Shown here: piece after piece, positions 43,429 to 63,595 of the stretch | How the letters are laid out: every line of letters starts with the position of its first letter | Numbering within the stretch: the first letter of the stretch is position 1 | Sequence record: PP886230.1 | DNA: 64,000 nt | Reading direction: 5' to 3' (one strand) | Notes under the pieces: model-generated | What the model saw: the letters and a program-made list of their open reading frames with translations, nothing else | What the model was told of the DNA's origin: nothing | Databases searched by the model: none | Translations under genes and position numbers: made by a program

Positions 43429-43620
43429 ATGTATAAAAACTTCTATATAAGTAAACTAAAAGAAAATGAACAAGTATGGATTAGATCTATAATTCCACTG
43501 GCATTTAATAGATATGCATTTAACAGATGTACCGAGATTGCTATAGACCCTTATAATATTAAAGAGAATGTACAGTATAATCAGTACTACTATATCTTAA
43601 TGCTTATATATAGAAAGTAA
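43429..43620 (+). CDS. Minigene array unit 21
   Basis: MYKNFY...FNRCT...LIYRK. Confidence 0.8.
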   Translation: MYKNFYISKLKENEQVWIRSIIPLAFNRYAFNRCTEIAIDPYNIKENVQYNQYYYILMLIYRK

Positions 43621-43637
43621 TTAAACACATAGAGACA

Positions 43638-43727
43638 GGGGAAGCTCCTAGTGAACAACCTTTATGTACAGGCGAATTGTTAAAATTCAGCCTGGACAAA
43701 TGCGATCACTAGGATTCTCCCCAGGCT
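43638..43727 (+). ncRNA. Candidate structured RNA downstream of the minigene array
   Basis: Nested stems GGGGA/TCCCC, TCCTAGTGA/TCACTAGGA, AGGC-GAATT/AATTC-GCCT. Confidence 0.4.
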
Positions 43728-44030
43728 AAACCCCGTAATCATAGGTAGTCATAAGTAATCATATATAAACATTTATATGAGCACCGTAGAATCACAGAAT
43801 GATTATATATGATTCAGTACTGATTAGTATAGACAAGATTGCTCAAGAATGCACGGAAATGTGTGTGAATGATTCAGTACTGATATGCCACTAAGTAGGC
43901 AGAGGAAGTCTGCCGTACTTTGTAGTTTCCAAGCTCCTTTTCCATTTTGTAAATTACATCAAATGTAATCAAAAGTAATCACGCAATGATTAGTACTGAA
44001 TTATTACTTTCACCTTAATTACAATTACCC

Positions 44031-44050
44031 TTTTACCCTTCGGGGTAAAA
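44031..44050. terminator. Perfect hairpin TTTTACCC-TTCG-GGGTAAAA
   Basis: 8-bp stem with cUUCGg loop; role uncertain. Confidence 0.5.
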
Positions 44051-44258
44051 TTCAATTACCCCTTGAGGCTCCAGCAAAAAGTTGGTTAGTACTCCATCCT
44101 AAATCTCGATCCTAAAAATTTTGGAGTACCTATGAAATAAAAGTTGGATCTTCGAAAGTTGAAATTTACGTTGGGACGTTTATGATTTGTGGGATATAAT
44201 GATGTTTGTAGACGGGTAGTTCTCAAGAATATCAGTACTGAATGGTGAAAGAAAGTTA

Positions 44259-44390
44259 TTGACATTATGATTCAGTACTGTATAATGTTTTACATAGAGA
44301 GATGAGTTGCCGCAAACAATTCATTCACTCTACCTCCTGTCGTGAGACAGTACAGAAAGATAGTTCCTCCAATGGGTGGTACATCTTTTT
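44259..44390 (+). ncRNA. Promoter-driven ORF-less ~100-nt RNA with three hairpins
   Basis: TTGACA-16-TATAAT; ATGAGTTG/CAATTCAT; CTGTC-GTGA-GACAG (GNRA); terminal stem plus TTTTT. Confidence 0.5.
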
Positions 44391-44691
44391 GAACCTCATA
44401 TGAAAATTGTAATAACAGTACTGATATTAACAGAATGGTGTCAGTACTGATTTTAATCTAAAGCATTATGCCACCAGCACAAGCTGGTGGATTCCCTCTA
44501 ACAGTATTCAGTACTACATGATAGTCTTCATCCTCCTAGGGTAACATAGTGAGGGCTATGATGGCAGTACTGAATACTCCCTTTCAAAAGATAGATCTAT
44601 GGTATAGTACTGACGGATTTTGGGCGTAGTTACCCTGGATGGATTTTGGACGTAGATATGTCTAGCCCTCCAGAAGTCTGGAAGTAAAGAT

Positions 44692-44794
44692 GGCTATCCA
44701 TCTAGACGGCTAAACGGCTAGATTTCTGGATGGCTAGACGTTTGGACGGCTAAACGGCTAGATGGGTACACGTCTGGAAGTATAGACGGCTAAA
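44692..44794. repeat. Iteron-like repeats GACGGCTAAA(CGGCTAGAT) at 44705, 44745, 44785
   Basis: Exact 40-nt phasing; seven GGCTA cores in ~100 nt. Confidence 0.8.
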
Positions 44795-44965
44795 TCAAAA
44801 TTTTATTTTGTTTTTCCAATAGTTCCCCTACCGCGTGGGGATAGTTTCCCCGCAGTATCTGAAGTTAGATTTTTCTGAATCTGGAATCATTATCTTATAA
44901 ACTGGGGGCAATGTCAACGGCCTGGCCGGATATTTTTAAAAATTTTTTCAGTACTGAATTTTGGG

Positions 44966-45232
44966 CGTAACTATGCACCCGATGGGCTTGAGTCTTTCTC
45001 GACTTGATGGAACTATTATACAGTACTGAAAAAATAAAGCAATACCCTGGAAGCAAAAAAGTTTTAATTAATTTGCTTGCTATCCTGGGCCGGACTATGG
45101 TACTATATTTCAGTACTGAGAAAGTGCGTTTACCTGCTAGGGTGCGGGAGTCTATCCTTTTTTTATATCTTGAATTTTGGACGGATCTTCCCACCCCCTG
45201 GGGTATCCGCTTTCTCGCGTCTATGTAGTAAT
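44966..45232. ncRNA. sRNA family B copies 1-3 (minus 44966-45009, plus 45110-45160, minus 45180-45232)
   Basis: Each follows its own promoter; core CCC-NNN-GGGTG; copies 2 and 3 are variants. Confidence 0.5.
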
Positions 45233-45410
45233 TATACGCTTTTTCAGGATCAAGTCAATACCTAAAAACAAAATAATTGAAAATAATTTAACGCGTTTAA
45301 ACGGCCCGTAACGCCCTGGATTGTTGGGAGTGGTGCAAATGTATAGCTTAGGTGTATTAATGCGTTAGAATGCGTCTGAGGCCGTTTTATGGGGTGTAGT
45401 AGTGATTTGG

Positions 45411-45503
45411 TTGATTCAGTACTGAATAATAGTACTCCTATATAGAAAGATAGTTCCCCTGGATTGATTCAGTACTGAATAATAGTACTCCTATATAGAA
45501 AGA
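45411..45503 (+). repeat. Exact 40-bp direct repeat (45411-45450, 45464-45503), each copy with two AGTACT
   Basis: TTGATTCAGTACTGAATAATAGTACTCCTATATAGAAAGA x2. Confidence 0.9.
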
Positions 45504-47054
45504 AAACTATTTTAAAAGTATTTGTAGAAAGTACTTGCACCGTACTGATAAAAGCGTATAATGTTTTACATCGAGAGCGGGAACACTTCCCGCTACACTT
45601 TAAGAGAGATTAATACGATGGCAACTCAAATCACCAAAATTATTGCTAACCTGGTTAACTTCCGCGACGAGATGAAAGATCTTCCGGCGGCGACGGTTAA
45701 AACTCACATTGACGCATACCGCGAACTGATTAAAATGCTGCCGCTTAAGCGTGAACAATACGCCGCTACCGTGATGCTTGATGCGATGATCCATAAGATG
45801 ATCGCCAGTGATTTGACGATGGTTTATCAGTATATGGGCGAAAATTTCGCGGTGTGTAGTAAGCCAGTACCAGGGATGGCAACAACTGAGGAATTGCACG
45901 GCTTAAACTTAAAACAAGATGCATGGGATAATATGCCTCGTTTCCTGGTATGGGCTGACAGTGGCAAAATTTACAAATAAGTTTAATAAAGTACTTGCAA
46001 ACTATGTTTAATGGCGTATAATGTTTTACATCAGGTGGGGAATAGTTCCCCACTATATAAGAGGATTAAAAAAAAATGGCTAAATCAAAAATGTTCTTAG
46101 GTCACAAAAACAAAACTCATTGGAATGTAAGCCTGTGGATTAATAACGATGAGGGATTGTATCGGTTGGCCCTGGACTTTATTGCCGCCAATACTAATCG
46201 CAATGATGCGGCCCGTCATATGATGTTATTTTTAGAACAGACTGGACAAGATAAAACACCGGACGGATTCAAATATAGCACTACTGCGATCCGTGCGGCG
46301 ATGGTTGGAATGTAATAGAATAGAATTTATTTAAAGTACTATTGCACGGGGATAGTACTTTATAATAGTGTTTTATTCATACACCAACGATAAGGGCAAC
46401 AGCATGAATATTAAGTATTTTGCGACGCGTGAACAAGCTCGGATCGCCGCTCGCCAGGACGGGGCAACGTTTAAAGATATGGGCGTACAATCGGAACGTG
46501 GTAAACGTTGGGCCATTGTAAAGCGTAGTACCGCCAGATCATTACAGTACTGGTTAGCGGCCTTAAAAAGTCCCGATAGTGTATCGCGTCGAGTGGTAGA
46601 AATAAAGCTCGACCGAAAGGGCAACCGCGTGACCGTGTACCGTACTAAAAAGATTGCAGTACTTGAATAAAAAGTACTTGCAAACTATGTTTAAAGGCGT
46701 ATAATGTTTTACATCGAGAGCGGGAACTCTTCCCGCCTATAACCTGGAGTAATAAAAATGACTAATATGTATATGACTGAAGTTAAAACCGTAAAAGATA
46801 CTACCACGAATAAAACTACTTACTTACAGCGGATCTGTGGTGTATGGCAACGTATCAGCAAATCAAAGTACTTTAAATTAACATCATATGCAAACCGTTC
46901 TGATTCATTCAGTACTGAAATAAAAGGTAATAAAGTACACCAATACGGCACTTATTATTATTACAGCCTGGACGCGATTGCAGTATAAGCAGTTTACAAA
47001 TCTTTACAATTGCCGGTATTGACTTATTTTGTCAGTACTGGCATAATGTATTCA

Positions 47055-47160
47055 TTGGCAGATAAGCCGTAGCCCATAGGGTGCGGGAGTGTATCTATAG
47101 AAAAATTAGTTTAGTATAGTTACAATTGTGCACCCGGTGGGTTAGCTGTTGTCATGGGGT
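47055..47160. ncRNA. sRNA family B copies 4 (+) and 5 (-), convergent
   Basis: Cores at 47071-47084 and 47130-47143; promoters at 47019-47047 (+) and 47163-47191 (-). Confidence 0.6.
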
Positions 47161-47272
47161 ATATTATGCCAGTACTTGATAATGCTGTCAATACTTTTTT
47201 TTACTATCCAGTACAGAAAACTATTTTTAAAAAGTACTTGCAAACTATGTTTAAAGGCGTATAATGTTTTAC

Positions 47273-47348
47273 ATCAGGACGGGGGAACGAAATAAGTAAC
47301 TTCCCGTTAAGTAGCCCAGGAGTAAGGCACACGAAAAACTCCCCTGAT
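47273..47348 (+). ncRNA. Structured RNA family A copy 1
   Basis: ATCAGG/CCTGAT closing stem, two inner stems, no ORF, followed directly by the next promoter. Confidence 0.6.
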
Positions 47349-47416
47349 AAAATAGTTTGACAAATGTTTTTAAAAGCGTATAATACTTACATCAACTACT
47401 GAATGAGGGTTACAAA

Positions 47417-48028
47417 ATGAAAACTATCACTACTACTACTTTCGTTATGGATTTTTCTGAATTGAACGCAGAACAAAAAACGTCAGCTATCGAACTGGTT
47501 CGGGAACGTGAAAAAAACTCAAACGACAATTATTTTTCTGAAAGTGAAATTGAATACTATAAAGAAACAGTACTACCGGAATATGGCATTAATGACGCTG
47601 AAATACAATTCAGTGGCTTTTGGTCCCAGGGTGACGGTGCATCAATCAGTACTGACCACGTTGACGCAGTGAAGTTTTTACGCAAGGTAAGAGCATTAAC
47701 TAAGTATCGCTCAATCCGTCACTTGCTGAATGAAGATGATTTGGCGATGAGTGTAAAGCGTTCGCACTCCCACTACTCGCATGAGAATACTGTAAGCGGG
47801 TACATTGAATCGGCTTACACTGATTTAACCGCAAAACAAGAAACGTTAGTTAATGAGCTTGAGGAACTACTCACTGATACTATTCGTGAATTGTCCCGCA
47901 AGTTGTACCGTGATTTAGAGAATGCATATGAGGATCAATTCACTACTGAAAACATTACGGCACTGATTGAGGGTAACGAGTATCAATTCAATGTTATTGA
48001 TGGCGTAGTGGAATCAATCGAATATTAA
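47417..48028 (+). CDS. Conserved phage/plasmid protein with FSGFWSQGDGA motif
   Basis: Family recalled as often auto-labelled antitoxin of a TA stability system; the label is unverified. Confidence 0.55.
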   Translation: MKTITTTTFVMDFSELNAEQKTSAIELVREREKNSNDNYFSESEIEYYKETVLPEYGINDAEIQFSGFWSQGDGASISTDHVDAVKFLRKVRALTKYRSIRHLLNEDDLAMSVKRSHSHYSHENTVSGYIESAYTDLTAKQETLVNELEELLTDTIRELSRKLYRDLENAYEDQFTTENITALIEGNEYQFNVIDGVVESIEY

Positions 48029-48647
48029 TTTAAAAAGTACTTGCAAACTAAGTTTAAAAGCGTATAATACTTTATATCGAGAGCGGGAATAGTTCCCGCT
48101 ACTAATGAGGAATACTACAAATGAATACTTTTACCTTCGCTCAATTGAACGCCCTGGATGTATTGTCTGATGCTTTGCGGGATGCAACTGAAAGCGGTTT
48201 ATTTGACAATGTTGACATTCACCCTGATGTAATTAATAATTTTTGTGATGCTATCGCAGAAGTACTGGAAGATCTAAAAAAATAATAGAAAGTACTTGCA
48301 ATTAGTTTTTAGTACTGTATAATGTTTTACATAGAGGGGAGAAATGGTTCTCCCTGGTAATGAGGAAAATACAATGGCTAATATCACTACTCTTTCCCAA
48401 CTGGAAGCACTGGTTAAATCTATGCGGGAACATGCCGACAATATCGGCGTAAAAGATCCAGCCGTTTGCTTCTGCGACGAATTGAATGATGATACCCTGG
48501 TAATAGCAGAAGTCCAGGACGTTTCTAACTATTCCTCGCGTTACACTGGCGGCGTAGCAAATAAAGGTGACTTCTGTTTATACCTTACCAAATAACAACG
48601 CGGGGAGATAATAACTCCCCGTTACTTTTTCAGTACTGAATCATTTA

Positions 48648-48700
48648 ATAGACGGATCTCGGCACCCGGTGGGTTAGTGACTGTTTCGTCTTGATGTAGT
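48648..48700 (-). ncRNA. sRNA family B copy 6
   Basis: TTGACA-17-CATAAT on the minus strand; AGACG...AACCC-ACC-GGGTGC...CGTCT. Confidence 0.6.
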
Positions 48701-49718
48701 AATTATGCCAGTACTGGATGCACTTGTCAACAACTATTTTTCAAATACTTTTTATTAAAATACTTGCTAATAGTTTTTAAACGCGTATAATGTTTTGCAT
48801 AGGGGGAGCGGTTCCCCTGGTAACTAAGGAATAATAAAATGCTTGAACAAATCAAATCAACGTCTGCGAATGTAACGGGAACGGTTGTACACTTTACTAG
48901 TGATGAATCGCGGGGCGTTCCCTATTGTGCTGTACATGTAAACACTGATGGCAACTACTGGTTTACGGTTTACGGATCATATTCATTTGGACGACCAGGG
49001 CATCAAAAAATTCTGGATAAAGTACAGCCAACGGGTAAAAATATCACGGCTGAAATGTTTTATAAAAAATCATAAAGTACTTGATAATAGTTTTTAGTAC
49101 TGTATAATATTTTACATCGCAAGGGGGTAATGGTTCCCCCTGGTAACTAAGGATAATCAAATGAAAGTTGCATTCATCGCCCTGGCTTTATCTGTTTCCT
49201 CTTTTGCTGTTAATGCGTCGTTAGATGTAAGTAGTGAAAAATTCATTCAGTGCACTGTAGCAATGACAGATGAAAGTACTGGCGAGATTGTATTAAAGGA
49301 TCTGGAGATTCAGCCGGAAGCATTTAAAAACGGCCCGTTCCATGAAGAAGACGAAAACGGTAGCACAACAATTTATTATGATGCCAGTACTAAACGCGGG
49401 TCGGTCACTGTTATGGATACTGAGAAAGTAACTCATACTGGCGTTATTAATTGCCGTTGATAGATACTACGGGGTAACATCATGACTAAGCGAATTGTTT
49501 TACTTAACGAAAGCAGTACTACACAACTACTTAACGCCGTGCATTATGATATTGAAACGAGCGTTAATCTTATCAGTACTGTAGTACTGTTGGACACTGG
49601 AAAGGTCGCCAATGATAAAGCGATTGCAGGTATACTAACGGATCTTGAGCCTGGTAGCAGTGCACCAATAACGTTAAATGGTAAAGTGTTTAATATTTTA
49701 CTCACTGATTAAGTACAT

Positions 49719-49742
49719 AGCCCACCTGGTGGGCTTTTTTGT
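49719..49742 (+). terminator. Terminator TAGCCCAC-loop-GTGGGCT-T tract (also ~50447 and ~54609)
   Basis: Hairpin plus U tract after a stop codon. Confidence 0.8.
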
Positions 49743-49829
49743 TTTTGTAGTATCGTAGTACTGAGATACTTTGAAAATAGTTTTAAAAAAGTAGTTGACA
49801 TTACCGCAGAAAAGCGTAGAATGTATTAC

Positions 49830-49902
49830 ATCAAGACGGGGAGCACTAAGTAGACCGCCAGTAAGTCGAACGAAAAACTGGACACGTCGAGAAAACTTTG
49901 AT
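49830..49902 (+). ncRNA. Structured RNA family A copy 3, leader of the H-NS-like gene
   Basis: Shares TAAGTAG and stem-AAG-N4-ACGAAAA-stem with covarying stem. Confidence 0.5.
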
Positions 49903-49943
49903 ACACTAATAAACGTAAACTAAACTTTAATTGAGGATTTATA

Positions 49944-50426
49944 ATGGCTAATGTAAAATCATTCATCAAAGCACTGGTAGCAAATGAAACTAACGTCGCG
50001 GCTGAGATCCTGGCTGAACTGGATAACGATACCATGAAAGCGGTACGCAATAATTTTAACATCGCGTACAGTACTGCGAAAGAACTACAAGCAAATAAAG
50101 CGGCAGAAATTGAAGCGGCAAAGGCGGCCCGTGAAGCAGAACTACAAGCAACAATCGAAAGTATCCAGGCGGCGGTGTCTGGATTGGATCTGGAAGTGGT
50201 TGTGGAAATGGCACATAAAGCCCTGGCGGTTAAGTATGGTGAAGATAAGCCAGAATCTAAACCCAAAAAATGGATTCAGGAACGCGTAGCGGTAGTACTG
50301 GACAACGGGGAAGAATATCTGATTCCGGTGCGTGGTAACTGTATTGCGGTAGTACTGGACGCTATCAAAGAAAGCGGTATGACTCGCGAGGAATGGATCG
50401 AAGCTCATCGCAAAGTTGAAGCATAA
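49944..50426 (+). CDS. H-NS/StpA-like nucleoid protein with degenerate DNA-binding motif
   Basis: Coiled-coil N-terminus and basic linker. C-term VVLDNGEEYLIPVRGNCIAVVLDAIKESGMTREEW aligns by eye with H-NS [35 protein letters not shown]. Confidence 0.7.
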   Translation: MANVKSFIKALVANETNVAAEILAELDNDTMKAVRNNFNIAYSTAKELQANKAAEIEAAKAAREAELQATIESIQAAVSGLDLEVVVEMAHKALAVKYGEDKPESKPKKWIQERVAVVLDNGEEYLIPVRGNCIAVVLDAIKESGMTREEWIEAHRKVEA

Positions 50427-50710
50427 CAATTAAAGTACTGAATCACTAGCCCACTGTATAAGTGGGCTTTTTTGTGTTTATCGTTTACCAGGCCACCAGC
50501 ACCGCCTAGAAACGATTCTAACGCATTAAACGGATTATCTGATGCATTGCCCTAGCTGGTGGCGTTAAGGCTGTAAGAACGCGATTGAGAGCGTTTAAAG
50601 TATTTTGCAAAAAGTAATAAAAAGTACTTGAACGATTAAGAGATTAGCGTATAATGTTTTACATCGAGAGGGGGAAACGGTTCTCCTTCCAAATCAAAGG
50701 AATCAAAACA

Positions 50711-53700
50711 ATGGCTATTATCATTACTCGCGTATCTGGTACTACTGGCAACGAACAAGTAGTTGCAGTCATTACGAACAAGGCAGGTGCGGAATTGCAA
50801 AATGCAATGAATACCTGGGCCGTTAATGAGTTCGGTCAGTGGGCAAGTGTAGCATACATTGAAACCTATCAAGTGCCGTCGATTAGTTTAACTGATTTGG
50901 GCGTTGAGCGTATCCTTTGCCTTGATGAATTAAATTAAAAAAGTACTTGCAAAGTAAATCGAATAAAGTATAATACATTACATCAAGGGGAGAAATGGTT
51001 CTCCCCACTACAAGGAAACTAAAATGGCTATCATTACTAAAATCAAAGTTAGTAAATCACTGGTTAAACTTGAAGAAGTGAAAGAAGGTTATAAAGTATC
51101 TTGGTGCGGTATGTATCGGACGTTCGCAGATATAGATGATGCGATCAATTATTACACTGACACGGTTAAAAACTTTGTTCGTGCTGATGTGGTTATGGCA
51201 GTGGCAACATATAAAGCATCAAAAGAAAGTAAGTAAAAATATTATCACAGTACTATTGACATAGTTTGATAGTACTGGCATAATAACTTTTATCAAGACA
51301 ACTAAGAGGAAATTAAAATGGCTAACATCAATACTATAGCAGCACAAAATATCAACCTGTCTTCTGTTGAAGTTGTACATATTGCCGCTCGGCGTTGGTT
51401 CCAGGCTTCATATGGTAACACTTATTTCTCTTTAAGTGTAGACGTAGAAATTGATGGTAATTTTATTGAAGTAGTAAACGTGCCGTTCCAATATGGATAC
51501 GGGGATCATTTTGACACTGTAGCAATGGAAGAATTTAGCAAGGTTATTAATATGGAAGGTAAAGAGTTTTTACGCGGTTCTTATCTTTCCCGTTTTTGCC
51601 GTGATAATAATATCACTGTTTATAGTTCTGTTAGTGATGTTAAACGCAAAAAAGATCTTTAATTAGCTTTACTTTATGCAGATACTTTGATATAGTGTCT
51701 GCATAGGGGAAAGAAATTAAATTAACTTAAGAGGATAGTATAATGAAAAATATCAGTACTTTAATCGATGCAGGTACTCATGTTCGTCGGTCTATGGTTG
51801 CAACCAGTACTACAAAACAAGTAGCGAGCGGTTATCTTGTATTTGTGCACGATGGTAAACTCCTGGAACGTTCAATCAATTTTGATGTTAAAAACAATTG
51901 CCGTTTTATTATCTTTAAGCGTGAGCAATATAAAATTGATTTACCAGCAAAGCCCATTAGTGGGGCGTACAACGTGCAATCATTGTTTGAACGTCAACCA
52001 TACACCTATTAATCAAAACATCGTTAGCGGTCGATTCAGGCCGCTTATATTGGGGATTATACCATGAACGTTAATCAAGTACTGAATGAGATCGAAAGCA
52101 TCATTAAACCGATGAAGCGTACTGATGCTATGTTAACACCGGAAGAATGCCGCCTTTATGAGCGTTACAGCGTCGAACAAGTCCAGGCAATGGCTATGGC
52201 TACCCCAGCCGTTAAACCGCCTGAGAATGCGTTACAGGACGTTACAGGGGATTATATCATCAATCCAGTACTAGGGAAGATGGCTGCAATCACCGAAGAT
52301 CAACAAGACTACTTAAGCCAGTACTTAAAAGGTTAATTAATATGCTTACTGTACAGGATAAGATCGACATCTTAAAGGTTAATATGTATGTGATTGATGC
52401 AGAACCTGGTAAAGTATTTGCATACGATGATAGTACTGTAAGCGATTTCTACTATAGCCAGGCCGTGGGGGATCTTTCTGTACAGTCGGTTATTGAAAAC
52501 GTAGTTAATGCAGCGTATGAGCATTTACTTTCAAATAGTACTTGCAATTAGTTTTTAAACGCGTATAATGTTTTACATCGAGAGCGGGAATAGTTCCCGC
52601 CTCACTTTTAAGGAATATGAAATGAAAGCATCAAAAAAGAGTACTAACAAGAAAGCACGTTCAACCTTAGATGGGGTATTCCCTTTACGTTTCGTTGATG
52701 AAGTGGTTTCCTACCCGCCTGGCCTTACTCCTGAGATGGTAGAAAGTTTGCGTAAATCTAAAAAATAGTACTTGCAATTAGTTTTTAGTACTGTATAATG
52801 TTTTACATGAAGGGGAGAAATGATTCTCCCCAATAACAGGAGAAACAAAATGAAACAATACAACGCTCGGTTTGATGTTACTATCGGTAACGGCAAAGGT
52901 CAATTCTCTTTCAGTACTCGCCGCAGTTATACAGAAAACTTCCTGCGTAATTGTGCATTGACCGCCGCTCAAATTAAACATTATTTTCAGGCTAAAAAAT
53001 GAGATCATTAGCTTATTACAGTTCGGCCCTGGTCGGTGCATTGATCGCGGCGTTGTTAGTAACCTATCTATTCTTTATGGTGATTTAAATGAATCCTAAC
53101 GGTATAATTTACAGTACTCCTAAAACGAAAGCAGACAAGGTAAACGCTAAAAAAGCGAAAGTAAAGGAGTACATCAAACAAGGAATGACACGAAAGGCGG
53201 CGATTCTAAAAGCTAAAAATAAATGAAAAAGTGGTTGACTTCGGTCAGCCATTTTGCTATTATATATTCATTGAGAGATAGCTCACTAGCCCACAGGGTG
53301 CAGGAGTGTATCTATTGTATAATGTTTGAGTACTGAAAACTATTTTAAAGTATTTGATAAAAAGTACTTGCAAACTATCTCAATAAGCGTATAATGTTTT
53401 ACATCGCAAGGGGAAACGGTTTCCCCTAGTAATAAGGAAACGAATCATGACTATCTCAATTGCTCAATCTAACTTTGAAAATGAAATCATCGCCCAGGCA
53501 CTGCGTTTAAATGATGGTCGGGCCGAAATCAATTACGGTTTCAATTCAGGCGGTTGTGAAAAATATCAGTACTTTGTAACGGCTGATGGCGGTGTACTGG
53601 GCATCAATACAGTTATTGTAAACATACAGAAAATTAATTTCAATGATCCAGACGATAGCCAGTTTTACATCACTGGCGTAGACGTGAACTATGAGGATGA

Positions 53701-54905
53701 CTCACTAACTGATGACCACACTGGCGAGAAGTTAGAAAGTGCATACGGTGAAGATGATTATCAGTCCGGTCCAGAAGATTTCGAATAATATTAAAAAATA
53801 GTTTGACAATAGATTATAGTACTGTATAATAGTTTACATCAAGGGGAGAAAAACTTCTCCCCACTAACAGAGAGAGAAAACAAAATGGCTAATATCCGGT
53901 CGAAATTAAAAAATGCAAAACAAGTTTTATTTTCAGATCATGAATACTTTAATAAAGATATTACAGGAGTTACAAGTATCAAGGAAGTAAAAGAAAAAAC
54001 CGGCGTTTTGTGTGATGTGCGATTAGTTGGGACATTTGGGAATAACGTGCTATATCGCTGTGGTGATTACAATTTTACACTGACTATCATTAACTAAAAA
54101 TATTATCACAGTACTATTGACATAGTTTGATAGTACTGACATAATAACTTTTATCAACTACACTACTAAGGAATTAAAAATGGCTATCATCGCAAAAACT
54201 GAAATCATCGGCCTGGATTCTATCATCATGACGTTTGAAGATCAAAAAGGTATGTATGTGGTTTCCTATGGTGATTATGTTCGGGAGTATGAAACGGTAG
54301 ACGAAGCCTTTGAAAGTTACATTCGCCAGGTGAATAAAGCATACGACGACTACCGCTAAAATATATTACCAGTACTATTAAAGATATTGACAACGTTTGA
54401 TAGTACTGTATAATAAGTTTTATAAACAGTAGTTAACTTAACCTAAGAGAGAAATAAAATGATCGCACTGGATTCATTCATCGACGCAGTACTGGCAAAA
54501 ACTGGCGAGGATCTGACCGCAGAACAATACGCGATGATCGAACAATGTCAACAGGACGGTAAATCGGTGAAAGATACTGTTAAGATTATCCGCAAGATGT
54601 AAGATTATAGCCCACTGGTTAACGCTGGTGGGCTTTAATTCATTACCCTATACAATGCCAGTACTAAACCGTTTATCTCGTTAGAATGCGTTACAGGACG
54701 TTTACCAATGATTAGCATGAAATCAGTACAAAAACAAATAGAAACATTATCAAAAATTAAACGTAAACAGTACTCCTTAGAATATACAATCAATGGTAAC
54801 TATCATCTAATGAAAGAAAATAATTTTATAGTCATTGATGAATCATTGCAAATCATTAGTATAGTACTGAAAGCATTAATCAATGACAGAAAAAAATTAA
54901 AATAA
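50711..54905 (+). other. Early small ORFs 50711-50938, 51024-51236, 51318-51662, 51743-52012, 52064-52336, 52342-52551, 52622-52768, 52850-53002, 53447-53788, 53885-54097, 54180-54359, 54708-54905
   Basis: Promoter cassettes and RBS; no confident function. Confidence 0.7.
53270..53315 (+). ncRNA. sRNA family B copy 7
   Basis: AGATA-GCTC...AGCCC-ACA-GGGTGC...GAGT-G-TATCT after a terminator-promoter. Confidence 0.6.
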
Positions 54906-54944
54906 ACTATTGACAATATCATCCAGCACTGGCATAATACTTAC

Positions 54945-54992
54945 ACCAAGACGAGAACGTCACTAACCCATAGGGTGCACAAATGTAACTGT
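54945..54992 (+). ncRNA. sRNA family B copy 8
   Basis: TTGACA-17-CATAAT at 54910; core AACCC-ATA-GGGTGC. Confidence 0.55.
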
Positions 54993-55236
54993 ATAATATT
55001 GATCAAAAAATGATCTGATCAATACTTGATCAATTTGCGTAAAGTAGTATAATTCTATGCAGTTGGTTAGACGAAAGGTTATGATTAGTAGTGCAAGTGT
55101 ATAAAAATTTTCATGGTGTATCGTTCCGCACATATGGGGATGAATATGTGGTATCATGTGGATTGGAAAAAGTAAGAACAAGTAATATTATTGTCGCATT
55201 ACAGTACTATAGTATTTTTATAATGAGGTTAAAATA

Positions 55237-55494
55237 ATGGCTGTAGGATTCGCGAAAGATGGGGCCGAGCAAGACGAGATTAACGCAGTGATTCAGGCCG
55301 CCGTTAACCACGCTAGAAAGCAAATTAACGCACAAATAGAATCACTGATACATTGCCTCGACTGCGGCGATATAATCCCTGAGAAACGACGCCAGGCCGT
55401 TAAGGGATGTAAGTACTGCATAACTTGCCAGGAGGATCATGATAGTACTTTTAAACGTCCCCCGCGTAATTGTTGGCATAGATCTATGAGATAA
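55237..55494 (+). CDS. TraR/DksA-family C4 zinc-finger protein (YbiI-like)
   Basis: G[FW]AxD N-terminus; CxxCGxxIPExRRxAVxGCxxCxxCQ. Confidence 0.9.
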   Translation: MAVGFAKDGAEQDEINAVIQAAVNHARKQINAQIESLIHCLDCGDIIPEKRRQAVKGCKYCITCQEDHDSTFKRPPRNCWHRSMR

Positions 55495-55557
55495 AAAGTA
55501 TTGACAGTACTGAAAGATAGTGTATAATGTTTTATATCTTAACTGAGGATAGTAATC

Positions 55558-55914
55558 ATGGGAATACAACATATCACGCGTACTACTGACAATGGCGAGA
55601 TCACTGGCTATCAAGTACAGGGCAAAGTAGCACAATTGCAGTACTGGTTTGTGAAACGTGGAATCATTGCACCGGATCTTGATTATGACCGTGTAGCGTT
55701 TATTGATTCTCTTTATGTTGATCCTGATAGTCGGGGCAATGGTGAAGGTAACGAATTAATGAATGCCTTTATTGATGCCGCCGATGATTCAGATTGTATC
55801 ATTTTAGAATGCGATACGGGAGAAGATAACGCCTTTAATCTTAAAGAATGGTACGAAGGTTTCGGATTCGAGGTACTGATCGATAGTGAATATCCTATCA
55901 TGATTTTATCATAG
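55558..55914 (+). CDS. GNAT-family acetyltransferase
   Basis: IDSLYVDPDSRGNGEGNELM (motif A) and WYEGFGF (motif B). Confidence 0.85.
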   Translation: MGIQHITRTTDNGEITGYQVQGKVAQLQYWFVKRGIIAPDLDYDRVAFIDSLYVDPDSRGNGEGNELMNAFIDAADDSDCIILECDTGEDNAFNLKEWYEGFGFEVLIDSEYPIMILS

Positions 55915-57307
55915 TACTTGCATTTAGTTTTCAGTACTGTTATAGTACTTGCATCAAGGGGAAACATCTTCCCCTACTAAGAGGAAATAAAAATGGAAAA
56001 CTTATCAAGTATTTTAGTACAAGATGATTTCGGTAATCCTGGAAGTGCTATCATTGTTCGGGGTAATAAAGCAACGTTTGTTATTGCTGGTGGACCAGTA
56101 CAGCGTAGCATTAAAAATAATGCTGTTACCATTAATAATGTACGCTATCGCTTAGATAAAGAATTGATTCATAAACTGTAATATTAATTTAATAGAGGAT
56201 AACAATAAATGTACATTCATACTACTATCACAAAGGAAGTCCGTTGCCAGTTCGAAAGTATTCCGGGCGTATGTTTCATCACTGGTACGTTTTCCCCTGG
56301 TGATCGTGATAATCCAGTACTGTTACAATTACGCCATCCATCATGGGATAAAGCATTTGATCTACCGTTGAATGAATTCGCAACTACTGCTGAAAAGTAC
56401 ATTAAAAATATTCGCGAGAATGATCGACTATTCATTAATGCTTTTAGTGATTCCGCGTTAAGCGAGATCCACGGCGTATTGGTTGCAATCATGGAATCAA
56501 TGCAGAAAACTAAATTCAAACAAGGTGAATAAAAACTATTGACAATGCAACCCAGTACTGTATAATAGTTTACATGAAGGGGAGAAATGATTCTCCCCAC
56601 TGAGAGGAAAGAAAAATGCAAGGTCAACTAATCGTTCGTAAATGGTCTGATACTAACGAAAAACCGTGGGATGTACAATACATCGGACCGGATGGGGTAT
56701 CACGTTATCAGCCTGGCGTAACGCATAGTACTGAGCAATATGCCGCCGCTCACCGCGAACGCCTGTTAGAATCCATGAAACAGGGATTCTGTGAAAAATT
56801 CATTCAAGATCATTGGCTGAAAGATTAATAGAAGGAGTACAGCTTATGCAAATGAATCCGATGATTATTGTTTTAGCTGTACTTATGATCATTCATGCAA
56901 TTGTAGAAGTATTAACGCAATCAGGAGTAATAAAATGATTCAAGTAGAATTATCAGTACTGAAAGATCTGTTTTATCGGTTAGGTACTACTGGAGAGTAT
57001 CCTAAAAGTGATACCGCAAAACTTTTTGTATCACTCGACTTATGGCAACGCGAACAATTAGTAATGTCCTGGCGTAAAGGTAAAGCAGATCGCGAGGTGA
57101 AAGCATGAAAGAATTCTTATTCGAAGTAGTGTTTCAAGGTGTCGGTAGTAACCAACTGATTCGCTCAAGTGGTTACAATGTTAACCAGGCATGGAATAAC
57201 ATTAAACAAATGTACCCGAACGCTATCACCTATCGCAACCCGAAAGAAGTTTAAAAATATTTGAAAAAGGGATTGACTCCGGTCAGTCCCTTTGCTATTA
57301 TATACGC

Positions 57308-57350
57308 ATAGAAACAATTCAGCCCACCGGGTGCATAAATGTATCTATTA
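57308..57350 (+). ncRNA. sRNA family B copy 9
   Basis: ATAGA...AGCCC-ACC-GGGTGC...TCTAT. Confidence 0.6.
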
Positions 57351-57426
57351 TATGCTGGTGGCTAGTACTGAAAACTATTTTTAAAAAGTACTTGCATTGT
57401 ATTTAGAATCAAGTATAATGTTTTAC

Positions 57427-57499
57427 ATCAGGACGGGGAACGAAACAAGTAACCCCGTTAAGTAGTCCAGGAGTAAGACATACGAAAACCTCCCCTGAT
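57427..57499 (+). ncRNA. Structured RNA family A copy 2
   Basis: Near-copy of 47273-47348; substitutions keep the stems paired. Confidence 0.6.
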
Positions 57500-59659
57500 A
57501 AAATAGTTTGACAATAGAAATTAAACGAGTATAATACTTACATCAACCACTGATAAGGAAACATAAAATGCGGATTCTACTGACAGCTAACGAAATCGAA
57601 CAAGTACTGACTACTAACCTGGAAGACTGGAAACGTGAAGCAGATATCCAGGCGGTTCAATGGTTAAATGATAAGTTAACGCCGGATGACTTAAGCAAGA
57701 TTGTAGATCCTCAATTCTACGAAGATATCCACGACACCGCGTTAAGCGTCGAGGATGTACTAGATAAGCACTTTATTGATACTGATTTGCAGGTTTACGG
57801 TCGTAAAAACTTTATCACTATTCACGACATTTACAATAATTAAGTATTGACAAAGTATCTTAGTACTGTATAATAGTTTACATCAAGCGAGGGGAATGGT
57901 TCCCCTCCTAACTAAAAGAGAGAAATAAAAATGGCTAAGTGCACTATCTGCAAGAAAGAAATAGTATTAGTTCCAAGTGCCCGTGAACGTGCCGCTCGGT
58001 TCGGTGGCAAAGCGTCAGACTATACAAAAATGTTTACTACCCATACAGCTTGCCAGGTAGCAAAACGTTCACAAGAAAGCGTAGAATTAATGCGTAAACT
58101 TTCCAAAAAATAAGTATTGACAAAGTATCTTAGTACTGTATAATAGTTTACATCAAGTGAGGGGAAACGGTTCCCCTCCTAACAAAGAGAGAGAAATAAA
58201 AATGGCTATGATCCTTGCCCAGAAAGTAGAATTGAAAATTGTAACCTCCTTTGACATTAACGTTAATCGGTGGACTGATTCACACGGCAATACTTACCAC
58301 TCTTGCTACGTGTCTGCGTTAATTGGCGACCGCTGGGAAGACCTGGGACACGAAACCTTTACATACGGTTACGGTACACAAGGCGAATACACGGGCTTGG
58401 AGATCATTAAAGAAACCGTTATAGGTTTCAACCCGAAAGAAAAAGTTATTCACCGCATCGAGGAAGAGATCAACAAAGAAATAACAGTTCGCTACCACGA
58501 TGTAAAACGTAAGAAAGACATGTAATAGAATCCATTTAAAGTACTATTTGACATTGCCCAGATAGTACTTTATAATAGACTCTAACTTGTAGTACTAACT
58601 TAACTAATAGGATGTATACCATGATTACTAAATTCTACGCTACCCGTGAAGCTGCCCGTATTGTTGCACGCGAGGAAGGCGAAACATTTAAAGACATGGG
58701 CAAAGATGCACCGAAAGGTCAACGCTGGGCCGTACAGTTCAAAGAGATCTCTGATATTGTGAATTCACCGGAGCCAGTACTAACAGCAGCAGAACTAAAA
58801 CGAGCGGATTTACTGGCGTCAATACTTGATGCACAAGATGAGTTTATCGCTGATTCTGATATCAAAGTACAGACAAACCACACCGCTTGGACTCACGCGG
58901 ATCACCTGGCAAACCTTAAGCGTCCAAGTGAACTGATTCGCAACCAGAAAGAGATCCGACACGACCGTAAGGGTAATCGTGTAACAGTATACAGTAAACG
59001 CCGCCAGGTTATCTAATAACTTGCAGTACTAACAACACGGCGGGATCAGTTCCCGCCTTTTTTATAGGACAAACAAAATGATTAAGGTTCAACTATATAA
59101 AGATAACATCTTACGGGTACACTATAAAGCACCTCAGAGAATCATCACAAAGGCCGTACAGCTTGCTAATGAGTTTATTAATGGTAACCTATTACCAAGG
59201 AAGTTAAGCAACGGGAAACTGCGTGTAATCGATGTGGACACTAACAACAGAATAGTAATAGAGAACACAGGAAAAATAAACCTATATGAACACCAACAAT
59301 ATAATAAGAAAATAAAACTAATATCACGTTGACAGTACTCAAATGTTTTAGTACTATATGTACATACCAACACGGGGGAAACAAAATGATTACTTTAGAA
59401 AAACGTATCAAAGAAACTACATCGCTGGTGGAACTGTTAACAGTACTCAAATGTAAAACAACACCATTCAGCACGCCGGACTTTATTAATATGGTTGATG
59501 TTAATGGTCGCTATCGTATCACGGTCGAACAAGGAGCGGCGAAAGTATTCAGTACTAAAAACACGAAGGAAGTGATCCACGCCGTTAATGTTAAAAAAGT
59601 AGTTGCCATTGATAGTAAAGTACTGTAAGATAGTTACATTAACTCAAGGAGAACATGCA

Positions 59660-60244
59660 ATGCGTAATTATACTAAATTCATCCGTACACTGTCAGAAAT
59701 GGAAACCAACAAAGAGATCCTTTCAGCTTGTCGGTTAGCTGGCCTGGAGATCATCGGTGCTGGTTCTTCCCGTATAGTATTCGCTTTAAATGATCGGTTA
59801 GTGATTAAGGTCGCGAATTGTGATGCGGGTGTAGAACAAAATGAAACTGAATGTAAGGTATGGAATTTTTTAGACTATGACCGCCCTCAGTTGAAACAGT
59901 ACTTTGCAAAGGTGCATATGCATTTATGCGATCCTGATAATATGTTTATCGTTATGGATCGGTTGAGTACTGCAAGCAAAGGCAGCGTAAAGCACGTTAA
60001 CGCGTGCAACGAATTAAAGTATAATATTAAACGTAATGCCATTGAACGCCAGCACCGCTTTGCTGATGCACTACAACACGTTGATGATACATTATCAACA
60101 CTAACGATAAGAGATATCAGAAAACAGAATATCGGCCAGGATCGTAATGGACTTATTAAAGTACTTGATTACGGTTTAACCCGCAATATCTGGAATCAGT
60201 ACTATAAAAAGCGTGATGTAGAAGCAAGTAAGGTAACACGATAA
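59660..60244 (+). CDS. Ser/Thr protein kinase-like protein
   Basis: IGAGSSRIV, VIKVA, DIRKQN, LDYG; GGAG RBS. Confidence 0.8.
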   Translation: MRNYTKFIRTLSEMETNKEILSACRLAGLEIIGAGSSRIVFALNDRLVIKVANCDAGVEQNETECKVWNFLDYDRPQLKQYFAKVHMHLCDPDNMFIVMDRLSTASKGSVKHVNACNELKYNIKRNAIERQHRFADALQHVDDTLSTLTIRDIRKQNIGQDRNGLIKVLDYGLTRNIWNQYYKKRDVEASKVTR

Positions 60245-60297
60245 AAAAAGATTAAAAAAGGGATTGACTCCGGTCAGTCCCTTTGCTATTATATATT

Positions 60298-60345
60298 CAT
60301 TGAGAGATAACTCACTGACCCATAGGGTGCGGAAGTGTATCTATT
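60298..60345 (+). ncRNA. sRNA family B copy 10
   Basis: AGATA...GACCC-ATA-GGGTGC...TATCT. Confidence 0.6.
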
Positions 60346-62557
60346 ATATAAGTATTCAGTACTGAAAACTATTTTTAAAAAGTACTTGCATTGTACTTAG
60401 AATCAAGTATAATGTTTTATATCGAGAGGGGAAATGGTTCTCCCTCAAAGAACAAGGAATAAAATCATGACTACAATGACTTGCATTCACGCTTCAAACC
60501 TGCTTAATGATGCGGCCTTTAATGTTGAAACAGAATATCAATGTTATCGGGATGAAAATAAAAAAGTTTTTGTAGTTGATAATAATGGTTTCCATATTGA
60601 ATTGCAATCCGGCTTCACTGGCGTTGATGGTAAATCAGTATGGGGCGTACAGGATGATAAAGGCACATATCATTTTAAACGTAATTAAGTATTGACAAAG
60701 TATATCAGTACTGTATAATAGTTTACATCAAGGGGAGAATAGTTCTCCCCACACCAATAAAAGGAAACATAATTATGTCTAGCTACTCCGCTACTATGAT
60801 CATTAAAGATATGAACGGTAATCCTACTTCTGCTGGTGGATCATTTGGAAACATTAATTTAGATGGTCGGTTATCCATGCAATCAGCAATCGATGCAGCG
60901 AAAGAAGTTTTTAAGAATGAATGTACTGTTAGTAAGCTGGATTATATGGGATTTGCTATCGAAAAAACTAATCGTTTTGTGGACTACAAAAAACCACTGA
61001 TGATTGATACTAACCTGAAAGCAAACGAAGTGGAGTACTTATTATGACAGTTGAAGAAGTAAAAAAAGTACTGGCAGTACTACGCTATCATAATCATTGT
61101 AAGGTGAAGAATGATCCTGATTATCTTGATTCATCCCTGGAAGAGGATACACTACAAGCAATAAGCCATATGCAAAAAATGCTTAAGCGTATGACCGAAA
61201 AGAACAGGCCAGACTATATCGGAAATAAAATTTAAAAAGTACTTGCATTGTAGTTAGATTAACGTATAATGTTTTACATAGAGCGGGGGAATAGTTCTCC
61301 CGCCAGTCCAGGAGATACACCATGAACACTATCGAAATCACTATCAATGCACACGTATACGACAACGTAGTACTGCAAACTACTATGACCGCTAATGATA
61401 CCAGTACTTTGCGGAATACTGTTATTAGTGCCGTATGTGCCGCTATCGGTGATGTCGCCCTGGAAAATGCAAAACACGTAAACGATGGTTTCACTATGTG
61501 CAAACGTGATAACGCAAAACATATCATCGTGGAAGGTTACGGCGGTGTAGAATTTAATGTTTATATGAAAAAAGTACTTGCATAATAACTAAAACAAAGT
61601 ATAATGTTTTGCATAGGGGGAGATATCCTCCCCCACTAAAAGGAGTACTAAAATGGCTAACTTTGATGAACTGATGCGGGAAGTAGCTAACCTGGCAGAA
61701 GAGAAGAAATCATTCGATTCTATCTATAACACCGCTCATCGTGATTCAGTACTGGCATGTAACCAGGATCAAAAAGATGAACTAATCGCCACCTATCATG
61801 AAGCATGGAAGTACTACCGACAATGGGAGAAAGAAGAAAGCGAGTCTACCATCAACGGCATCAATAATCTAATCTAAAAGTTTTATTTCAGTACTATTGA
61901 CATAGCTTGATAGTACTGATGTAATAACTTTACTAACTACAAGGGGAAACATAATGGAACAGTTCACACAATATCGGGTAAATCCTCAAGCTATGGCCTA
62001 CGTAGAAGACCATAAAACGTTACCAGTACTGCAACCAGTTAAAGGCCATATCTATCGTGCAATGTCGTGGTGTGCGGCCCAGGATGGCTATAAAACCGTA
62101 GCCGTGGGTATGTACTGCGGTAATGGTGAATGGTTTGATCCAAATAATCCGGTAGCCATTGACAGTACTGAAAAAATGAAATGGGCCGACTACATCGAAG
62201 ATATTTCATAAAAACTATTTGACAGTACTAACCAGTAATGTATAATGTTTTACATAGAGCGGGGGAATAGTTCTCCCGCCAATAGTTTGGAGTTAAACAT
62301 TATGTCTATCGCTATCTCCCTGGTTGAAGTACTGAAAGAAGCTAAAGCCAACCAGATCGACGTAAAGATCCAGGAACTACAAAACGGCTTAATCGGCTGT
62401 ACTTGTACCGCTGGTGGAGCGGCAGACTATCGAGAACACGAATCACTCGAATCACTGGTTCGGTATCTTTCCATGATCGTTGATGATTGGAGAATCATCT
62501 AACAAAAAAGAATAAAAAAGGGATTGACTCCGGTCAGTCCCTTTGCTATTATATACG

Positions 62558-62598
62558 CATAGACAAAAACTAGCCCACAGGGTGCATAGGTGTATCCA
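62558..62598 (+). ncRNA. sRNA family B copy 11
   Basis: Core AGCCC-ACA-GGGTGC after the terminator-promoter at 62520. Confidence 0.55.
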
Positions 62599-63595
62599 AA
62601 ATATATAGTTAATAACGGTGAGTAACTATCTGCTGGTGGAACTAAAACTATTAATAAAAAAGTATTGACAAAGTATATCAGTACTGCGATAATGTATCTC
62701 GTAGGGCGGCAATGGTGCGACGGCCCACAAAGTTAGGAGATTCAAAATGACTACTTCAATCGCTATCGTTAAAGCTTTCATCCGTACTAATGTTTCCTCT
62801 GTATTCATCGACGGCCTCGACCGTAACGTAGAATACTCAATCATTATCGCACAAACGGCAAACGGTTCTCGGTACATCCTGAATGATAGTGAAGCAAATC
62901 ACTACTACTTCACTAAAGCCACTGGCTTTAAACGCATCGATGCTGATGTAGTATACGCTAAGATGAATAAGCTGGTAGATAAGATTAACGCTAAAGGTAC
63001 TATAGATTTACAGTACTGGACCGAAACCGATCCAGAGTATGGATCTCACCGCTACCTGAATCCAGGTATCAAAATGTAAAAAGTACTTGCATAGTACTTA
63101 GATTCATGTATAATGTTTTACATAGAGAGGGGGAAATGGTTCTCCCTCCTAAATTAAGGAGTTTTATCATGACCTTCTCAATCAATTCCTTCGCTGACGT
63201 TTTAGTACTGGCCCGGACTTTTGGTAAAGATGCACTGGAGTACGCTGTAAGTAATGGCACTATCCAACCGGAACAGTGCCGCATCATTGGAAACTGCAAA
63301 CGTTGGGCGGTATCCAATACTATTGCACTGGAAAACTTCCACGATGGCAACAATGAATATTCTGTTGATGTAGTATTCGAAGCCGTTGATCTCGGCGGTA
63401 TCTATAATACTAACCTGAATGATGTGCGTATCGTTCGCACGGGGTTCGGTGCTTATGATGTATCTATCCGTGAAGCTATGAACACCGGATACATTAGCAA
63501 GGACTTACTTGCTCACATCATGCAGCTGTGTACGGAACGTAACGAAGCACGTACTATCTTAGGGCTGTAAGCAATACACATCACCAAACATCATA

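Follow-up and report, generated by a model that had tools for sequence, protein, structure and literature searches.

What is the role of a short hairpin that recurs near one end of a jumbo-phage genome, each time behind a promoter of its own and with no reading frame attached? The element, here called Family B, lies in a 64,000-nt stretch of sequence record PP886230.1 (the window), which belongs to an Asteriusvirus (RaK2-like) jumbo phage whose host is E. coli. The PP886230 record begins at window position 43894, and all Family B copies sit 1.1–18.7 kb rightward of it. In the Muenster record, PhageTerm places a terminal repeat at 1–20,030, and the start base is homologous to the PP886230 start and lies in the same conserved sequence. 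Because the Muenster record begins at this homologous base, we read 43894 as the probable left physical genome end and start of the direct terminal repeat. By homology, the Family B region would be a direct terminal repeat of ~20 kb carrying small early gene cassettes, and this copy-bearing end is probably the part of the genome that enters the cell first. In K64-1, 10 of 10 copies fall within 17 kb of a 347 kb genome, an interval that matches the Muenster PhageTerm repeat.

The exact 12-nt core occurs nine times in the window, where 0.56 would be expected by chance, and every core position given in an earlier note on this DNA was recovered; its plus-strand coordinates were 2 nt lower because its core began 2 nt further 5'. 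Allowing up to one mismatch gives 10 copies (0.56 expected), a count reached by 0 of 100 shuffles. A covariance model trained on 13 copies scores the nine exact copies at 26.7–63.2 bits and finds 10–11 copies in total, confined to 44.9–62.6 kb; across window positions 1–44000 it returned nothing better than E 0.96. Of two variants that had also been proposed, the minus-strand one at 45191 is supported, while the plus-strand one at 45132 is only marginal. The copies are all intergenic and dispersed at spacings of 57 nt to 6 kb. The individual units are as follows.

44958..45042, minus strand: unit 1; promoter 45015–45042, module 44958–45006, core 44975–44986; 46.8 bits.
45067..45162, plus strand: unit 2, a degenerate variant with a weak promoter; module 45107–45162; 12.7 bits, E 0.36, marginal; convergent with unit 3.
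45174..45258, minus strand: unit 3, a variant; promoter 45231–45258 (TTGACT-16-TATAAT), module 45174–45222; 22.4 bits, E 5e-4.
47019..47101, plus strand: unit 4; promoter 47019–47047, module 47054–47101, core 47073–47084; 47.1 bits.
47113..47191, minus strand: unit 5; promoter 47163–47191, short-type module without a stable P1 hairpin, core 47130–47141; 26.7 bits.
48600..48730, minus strand: unit 6; promoter 48702–48730, module 48645–48693, core 48662–48673, bidirectional terminator hairpin 48600–48622; 38.2 bits.
53228..53318, plus strand: unit 7; terminator hairpin 53228–53255 holding the -35 of promoter 53235–53263 (PeSL-type composite, see below), module 53270–53318, core 53290–53301; 56.2 bits.
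54910..54995, plus strand: unit 8; promoter 54910–54938, module 54947–54995, core 54967–54978; 39.2 bits.
57266..57351, plus strand: unit 9; terminator/promoter composite 57266–57301, short-type module 57308–57351, core 57323–57334; 35.2 bits.
60257..60347, plus strand: unit 10; terminator/promoter composite 60257–60292, module 60299–60347, core 60319–60330; 63.2 bits, the top score in the window.
62517..62602, plus strand: unit 11; terminator/promoter composite 62517–62552, short-type module 62565–62602, core 62574–62585, tail degenerate; 36.8 bits.

Unit 1 is followed by a co-directional promoter with its -35 at 44917. Units 4 and 5 are convergent, with core starts 57 nt apart. The orthologue of unit 11 in a 121Q-like phage keeps the usual tail.

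Each copy has its own sigma-70-like promoter, as had been claimed, with the -10 hexamer ending 21, 26 or 28 nt upstream of the core. In the cross-genus set of 84 distinct copies, 83% show a promoter that scores 9/12 or better at the expected spacing, as compared to 1.2% of random positions. The promoters are near-consensus for host sigma-70 and the copies lie in the terminal-repeat early region; early expression, as proposed before, is therefore very probable.

Downstream of a fixed +1 A, the module of ~50 nt (49 nt) comprises a hairpin (P1), a second hairpin (P2, which is the core) and a tail, in that order. P1 is a 4-bp hairpin with an A-rich loop, placed 2 nt from the 5' end, whose sequence is free and whose pairing is kept: 28 distinct stems occur among 66 copies, 91% of cells are paired, and double-sided changes are seen at each of the four pairs in 29–36 of ~70 sequences. 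Its covariation score is 0.46, against 0.15 for shuffled alignments and no more than 0.07 when partners are slid, and the top four column pairs by mutual information are exactly the P1 pairs. About a quarter of the copies lack a stable form of P1. P2 is a near-invariant mini-hairpin of three C-G pairs closed by A-U or G-U around a loop of 3–4 nt; it is 98.5% paired, with two cases of compensatory C-G to U-A change. The tail is a conserved, unpaired stretch of 17 nt. In total we counted 52 G-U against 6 A-C pairs, in an alignment that was fitted to the model and favours structure; this large excess of G-U assigns the fold to the transcribed sense strand. Folding energies of single sequences do not improve on those of shuffles (z -0.0 to -1.6).

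These in silico data bear out the view of Family B as a multicopy, promoter-driven, ORF-less structured RNA and revise its anatomy. The earlier note had described an outer stem (AGATA/TATCT and similar) that varies yet stays paired. A helix of this kind exists, as P1 just upstream of the core; the stem originally drawn does not hold. Its 5' partner differs between copies, being either the P1 loop or the 5' end; three of the nine exact window copies lack the stem; and no tail column covaries with an upstream column (best mutual information 0.34, not pair-like). The modules have neither a conserved start codon nor an ORF, and where GenBank places short ORFs over some copies (for example, record 9330–9443), no start codon is conserved at that position in 83 aligned copies from relatives. 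P2 was also considered as an intrinsic terminator and rejected: a purine-rich stretch rather than a T run follows it, and P2 accounts for 0 of 25 terminator-like sites.

Family B is present in every related genus sampled, with 9–13 copies per fully sampled cluster, and is conserved near letter-for-letter in related phages that infect five further host genera. Core and tail are near-invariant across Asteriusvirus, Alcyoneusvirus, GAP32, CBB and Eneladusvirus, while the flanking proteins are only 24–74% identical. The families of Rfam 15 include CRISPR direct repeats, retron msr, ToxI-type RNAs and small ribozymes. No Rfam 15 family matches anywhere in the whole window at gathering score, and a 20 kb scan gave nothing at the Family B sites at E up to 10. 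A 141-nt scan returned only matches of 13.7–14.8 bits, to three microRNA precursor families and K10_TLS; these were rejected as identities, as they merely read a convergent pair as one long hairpin. Among 5,426 E. coli genomes there is no long match to Family B, the searches turned up no host RNA that resembles it, and the literature and databases searched contain no published description of such an RNA. We take Family B to be a genuine family of structured RNA modules, ~50 nt each and previously undescribed, that is specific to the terminal repeat of RaK2-like jumbo phages.

The closest described elements are the promoter-early stem-loops (PeSLs) of T4-type phages (PMC2839356, PMC4122927). 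As in a PeSL, a terminator hairpin is joined to a near-consensus sigma-70 early promoter, and the unit recurs where small-ORF cassettes meet within a plastic region; the present hairpin shows the A-run/G-run ... C-run/T-run layout reported for the nt-1/KVP40 pair. Four of the nine exact copies carry this composite, their terminators (53228–53255, 57266–57293, 60257–60284 and 62517–62544) containing the -35 hexamer, and the other five have an ordinary promoter without a terminator hairpin. The G17 annotation labels the composite hairpin a terminator. Near-unchanged, the hairpin composite recurs in Vibrio phage VH7D, where a ribosome-binding site and gene directly follow. A PeSL likewise drives an ORF directly, whereas the Family B promoter serves a conserved module that has no ORF (P1, P2 and tail) that is part of no described PeSL.

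In our working model, host sigma-70 RNA polymerase would start each module at the fixed A, 6–8 nt past the near-consensus -10 hexamer, and P1 may stabilise the 5' end of the RNA. Each unit would yield a stand-alone, abundant, immediate-early small RNA, its 3' end set, 25–65 nt past the tail, by a terminator hairpin, by a convergent sister unit or by polymerase sitting on the next promoter. A stop feature lies 24–63 nt past the tail in all 11 window copies, and for unit 6 a discrete RNA of ~90 nt is predicted. P2 and the tail would form the putative binding site of one conserved protein, of host or phage; the bound RNA may act as a decoy, sponge or cofactor, and the many copies would provide a high dose ahead of genome replication. 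Among the proteins neighbouring Family B copies, none yielded an RNA-binding domain. We favour this stand-alone, protein-binding RNA tentatively, at a little below an even chance.

The main rival places the function in cis. Here, RNA polymerase reaching about +40 to +45 would be paused or modified by the nascent P2 and tail, in the manner of a hairpin-stabilised pause or of a put/nut/ops-like loading site, and the module would be a leader or insulator between a cassette terminator and the next promoter; we regard this as possible, if on the unlikely side. It is consistent with a position that is fixed relative to +1, with copies always flanked by a terminator on one side and the next promoter on the other, and with the DksA/TraR-type polymerase-binding protein encoded in the same region. 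Most plus-strand copies have no terminator of their own, such that transcripts could run on into the next gene, and several copies stay in front of one and the same gene across 3–4 genera, which also fits a role in cis. The published pause consensus, G-10 Y-1 G+1 (PMC5423485, PMC9291695), is present in 47 of 83 copies when alignment column 62 is taken as -1; taking column 64 instead, 8–10 nt after P2, gives a pyrimidine at -1 in 83 of 83 copies and G-10 with a purine at +1 in 81 of 83. In such a pause the nascent hairpin is expected some 10–11 nt upstream. Hairpin-stabilised pauses of the hisL/trpL type (PMC9291695) resemble this arrangement in that a small nascent hairpin lies 8–10 nt upstream of a G-10 Y-1 G/R+1 fit, but Family B has no leader peptide or attenuator, its conservation continues well past the pause consensus, and that consensus accounts for only 3 conserved tail positions. 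Orientation also argues against action in cis: about one third of copies point against genes or form convergent pairs, single minus-strand copies lead directly into a terminator hairpin behind which there is no gene, and each downstream gene has its own strong promoter. In HK022 put and lambda nut, too, the opening ~50 nt of an early transcript contain two small stem-loops and the region is rich in terminators, yet P1 and P2 are far smaller than put stems (4 bp each), there are 10–13 copies rather than two, and about one third are convergent or have no downstream gene. A processive antitermination site of the put/nut type should precede, in the transcript, the terminators and genes that it serves, and this fails for that third of the copies, which are minus-strand or convergent.

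Other readings fare worse. A DNA-level element, either a protein-binding site or a hot spot for cassette-shuffling recombination like the T4-type PeSLs, with the RNA fold incidental, strikes us as improbable. Four window copies are indeed fused to the nt-1/KVP40 PeSL-type composite, which drives an ordinary gene in VH7D; gene order in the terminal-repeat region is heavily shuffled between genera; and convergent pairs form inverted repeats of 25–30 bp. A duplex site, though, needs neither P1 covariation nor the 52:6 ratio of G-U over A-C, recombination needs homology rather than an invariant 12-nt hairpin with diverging flanks, and the PeSLs of other phages lack the Family B module. The transcript could instead prime DNA synthesis as a persistent hybrid, at transcription-primed replication starts or in another terminal-repeat DNA transaction. 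A promoter, a structured RNA and an AT-rich downstream stretch would suit this role, as would confinement to the terminal repeat, and either orientation would work; but ten to thirteen origins in 20 kb are implausible, no iterons or unwinding element are common downstream of the tail, and convergent pairs would drive forks head-on, so we give it a very small chance. Mimicry of a host immune RNA, namely a CRISPR repeat (as an RNA anti-CRISPR), a retron RNA or a type III antitoxin, is highly unlikely. It draws on matches of 7–8 nt named in the earlier note and on toxin/antitoxin-like genes in the region (a ParE-like domain; a YeeU-like antitoxin in the K64-1 annotation). Against it, the Rfam 15 and E. 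coli genome searches above give the CRISPR and retron leads no support, the stem described in the earlier note is not the conserved structure, P2 is just a 4-bp stem with a 3–4 nt loop, and the same module occurs in phages of six host genera. The units are also dispersed with their own promoters; a ToxI-type antitoxin RNA, which requires tandem direct repeats by a toxin gene, was rejected accordingly.

The preferred reading, a stand-alone early RNA, has partial counterparts elsewhere. SPO1 and T5 carry host-takeover modules in long terminal repeats (the SPO1 terminal redundancy and the T5 pre-early region), and these resemble the present region in their dense, strong host-type promoters and very small genes; to our knowledge, no multicopy structured non-coding RNA has been reported from either. 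Phage RNA decoys (RNA anti-CRISPRs and pseudo-ToxI) and the abundant small decoy RNAs of some eukaryotic viruses are likewise non-coding, promoter-driven, of high dosage and, in our model, early. Family B showed no similarity to any host RNA in our searches, and we do not claim membership. A bolder form of the model, which we consider rather unlikely, is that at least 20 copies per injected genome, counting both terminal repeats, flood the cell within the first minutes with one tiny RNA that disables or re-programmes a conserved enterobacterial protein. That protein could be a ribonuclease, a defence sensor, a regulator that binds RNA or RNA polymerase.

Against E. coli and Klebsiella, RaK2-like jumbo phages (Asteriusvirus, Alcyoneusvirus and relatives) serve as candidates for therapy; in the early regions of their terminal repeats, nearly every annotation still reads "hypothetical protein". 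Part of that region does not code for protein and bears instead a multicopy RNA that is conserved and whose fold is backed by covariation, and spurious ORF calls in deposited genomes are corrected as a result. The near-invariance of a 12-nt hairpin and its tail, beside neighbours at 24–74% identity, points to a specific and important partner, for which the ~50-nt module offers a short, synthesisable handle. The PeSL idea is also extended, in that a mobile promoter/terminator cassette can bear an RNA gene in place of an ORF. Should the flooding reading be true, Family B would be a phage counterpart of eukaryotic-virus decoy RNAs and a new class of host-takeover factor.

The Family B module, an ORF-less RNA of about 50 nt, recurs between 44.9 and 62.6 kb of the window. 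Its 12-nt core pattern is present exactly nine times, at the places listed in the earlier note, and allowing up to one mismatch gives 10 matches in the window against 0.56 expected. Searching with a covariance model (R1) of 13 copies found the nine exact-core copies again, together with a variant at 45174-45222 (-) (E 5e-4); in window 1-44000 the model's best match reaches only E 0.96. The proposed total of eleven copies is a fair count by this search, with one member, the marginal variant at 45107-45162 (+) (E 0.36), in doubt.

In the complete K64-1 genome, all 10 model matches lie within 17 kb and none in the remaining 329 kb. Of the 13 stretches found by scanning IMG/VR for the motif, 12 belong to contigs of 345-378 kb; the other is on a contig of 109 kb. 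A set of 185,579 bacterial and archaeal genomes gave a single match, to an unrelated palindrome resembling a terminator in a Parcubacteria MAG, which is at chance level given the roughly two chance matches expected by our own estimate. A 55-nt query was without match in E. coli genomes at E up to 10, in a search blind to matches shorter than ~19 nt. The Rfam search called for in the earlier note matched no known family to Family B, with zero families at gathering score across the whole window and nothing relevant at E up to 10 in 20 kb or on 141 nt; no description of the element was found in the literature and databases. A terminator-like hairpin at 50448-50468 overlaps a weak Rfam Trp_leader match at window 50411-50475 (+), which reaches 29.9 bits (E 0.015) where the gathering score is 41; the match is probably just that terminator.

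Each core had been said to follow its own sigma70 promoter, and all nine exact copies do follow a -35/-10 pair when read in their own orientation, with the -10 hexamer ending 21, 26 or 28 nt upstream of the core. Across genera, a promoter scoring at least 9/12 stands at the right distance in 83% of 84 distinct copies, compared with 1.2% of random positions, and its spacer is usually 17 nt. The model begins with an A, preceded by C and 6-8 nt past the -10 hexamer; judged by this spacing, that A is the expected transcription start site.

Copies were taken from K64-1, RaK2, GAP32, CBB, Serratia BF, Yersinia fHe-Yen9-04, 121Q-like phages and three metagenomic contigs, yielding 91 model matches, 83 of them distinct. 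Two nucleotides after the start A lies P1, a 4-bp hairpin with an A-rich loop of 6-8 nt. Its four pairs are 84-99% paired, with 29-36 sequences changed on both sides at each pair, and they are the four top mutual-information column pairs of the alignment; the stems take 28 different sequences across 66 copies. P1 covariation is 0.46, compared with 0.15 after shuffling and at most 0.07 with slid partners. The alignment behind these pair counts was fitted to the model and is biased toward structure; an alignment-free check points in the same direction, with 64% of upstream segments folding at -2 kcal/mol or better compared with 22% of shuffles. About a quarter of copies are of a short type that lacks a stable P1.

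A linker of 3-4 nt joins P1 to P2, the mini-hairpin that is the core itself. Among the 83 distinct copies its closing base is A in 41, G in 38 and C in 4, its three C columns are kept in 82, 83 and 78, and its three G columns in 81, 83 and 82. The T that follows is invariant (83/83), so that the closing pair is A-U in 41 copies and G-U in 38, and is itself followed by G (81) and C (75). Most loops (71 copies) are 3 nt long and always start with A, the other 12 being 4 nt long; in two copies a C-G pair is replaced by U-A, a compensatory change. Beyond P2 runs a 17-nt tail in which several columns are 77-92% identical without any partner column. Pairing of the P2 3' half with this tail was considered and rejected for want of covariation. 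The outer stem of the earlier note, held to vary while staying paired, likewise shows no covariation in the alignment and is, on the aligned sequences, the P1 loop or the 5' end chancing to match the tail in some copies.

Single-sequence folding scores the nine window copies no better than shuffles, and MAFFT with RNAalifold on 76 copies recovers P2 alone, because P1 is out of register in that alignment; the model-based alignment mended the register. Counting every paired cell gives 532 Watson-Crick pairs, 52 G-U and only 6 A-C, an asymmetry that assigns the fold to the strand with the transcript's sequence. The RNA-level nature of Family B is well supported.

What follows each window copy, 24-63 nt past its tail, is either the promoter of the next gene, a convergent sister unit or a terminator hairpin. 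When strict criteria are applied across genera, 50 of 74 copies have such a feature; by eye, most of the others have either a promoter whose -35 hexamer is off consensus or a terminator in reverse orientation. Convergent pairs with core starts 57 nt apart occur in this phage, a 121Q-like contig, GAP32 (three pairs) and CBB; read-through transcripts are predicted to form a hairpin of ~28 bp (-43 and -57 kcal/mol, z -6 and -10). In four window copies the promoter's -35 hexamer lies within the upstream gene's terminator hairpin, and the G17 record annotates the -35-bearing hairpin as a terminator. This composite is the same as the PeSL (promoter-early stem-loop) of T4-type phages (PMC2839356, PMC4122927); Vibrio phage VH7D has a nearly identical one, but with a gene directly after it.

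Of the readings considered, we rank first a stand-alone small RNA, since the module is conserved whichever way it points, single copies on the minus strand run into a terminator with no gene beyond, and every downstream gene has its own promoter. A cis-acting pause or leader element remains a strong alternative: in many copies the tail matches the published G-10 Y-1 G+1 pause consensus (PMC5423485, PMC9291695), and plus-strand copies have no terminator of their own. A DNA site, a replication primer and an immune-RNA mimic are weaker explanations. Several other candidates were rejected: a small ORF has no conserved start codon, a riboswitch is at odds with minus-strand copies that have no regulated gene, and for CsrA or ribosome sponges the GGA and Shine-Dalgarno-like stretches are confined to some copies (GGAG in 22/83). 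A search for tail-complementary targets gave one non-self match in the window and so no enrichment, and no RNA-binding partner was found among the neighbouring proteins with Pfam and PHROGs.

Other elements share this DNA. AGTACT, a palindromic hexamer, is far in excess of expectation throughout the genome, with 291 copies in the 64-kb window and, in a non-repeat part of K64-1, 40 in 15 kb against 3.2 expected; its density is 2-2.6 per kb across K64-1 (loci L020-L026) and 5.6 per kb in the locus holding the terminal repeat. Its sites include promoter spacers, -35 regions and the DNA upstream of UP-like A/T tracts, and it falls within 30 nt after the Family B tail in 48 of 76 copies compared with 16% of random positions. 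A phage DNA-binding or DNA-modifying protein may recognise it. Another promoter-driven unit without an ORF occurs twice (window 47272-47350 and 57426-57500 (+)), in each case with a Family B unit on one side and the promoter of the next gene on the other; in its predicted fold a long-range stem closes two hairpins (-19 kcal/mol, z -1.4 and -2.3). Between 45500 and 63200, small genes mostly have their own promoter, and at about 25 sites (e.g. 48289-48345 and 52765-52821) a conserved stretch directly past the -10 hexamer and a G+C-rich 5'-UTR hairpin, a few nt past the start site and before the ribosome-binding site, recur; these are probably the earlier note's Family A. In many of these promoters AGTACT overlaps an off-consensus -35, and others have a perfect TTGACA; these could be two temporal classes.

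Other Asteriusvirus (PBECO4/121Q-like) jumbo phages, of ~350-380 kb, match window 44900-49900 at 90-97% identity, and base 1 of record PP886230 is window position 43894. In Muenster, PhageTerm predicts a terminal repeat at 1-20,030; its first base corresponds in alignment to K64-1 locus position 9206, which is 17 nt away from K64-1's leftmost, degenerate Family B copy, and PP886230 begins at the homologous base of a conserved sequence shared with Muenster. The CBB terminal repeat is 22.5 kb, backed by read depth and PFGE (PMC5259590). From the K64-1 clustering, these record starts and the CBB repeat, we infer that window ~43,894 to ~63,650 would be the terminal repeat, with Family B confined to it. 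The conserved sequence marking the PP886230 and Muenster record starts lies at 43876-43895, within an ORF-poor stretch of ~2 kb that surrounds the putative genome end (43600-45530), is dense in CAGTACTG copies and holds a 16/32/40-nt tandem array at 44703-44794. From ~20,200 of PP886230, just beyond the window end, one-promoter-per-gene cassettes switch abruptly to tightly overlapping small genes, coinciding with the putative right boundary of the terminal repeat. No tRNA genes were found in the window.

In the deposited annotation, hypothetical proteins of 30-40 aa are called over Family B modules and promoters, and these look like over-calls. Examples, among others, and the terminal-repeat ORFs with domain matches are given below.

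Selected features (window coordinates)
48727-48855 (PP886230 4834-4962), ORF call over Family B
53223-53336 (PP886230 9330-9443), ORF call over Family B
55237-55494, DksA/TraR-type zinc-finger protein
55558-55914, GNAT acetyltransferase
59078-59332, ParE-like toxin-domain protein
59660-60244, weak protein-kinase-like match

Proteins flanking the copies share 24-74% identity between genera, and their order is shuffled. The homologue of the 203-aa gene (47417) nonetheless has a copy upstream in four genera, as does that of the 113-aa gene (53447) in three. The K64-1 repeat also has an annotated YeeU-like antitoxin. By its predicted gene content, the region would fit a host-takeover or anti-defence island.
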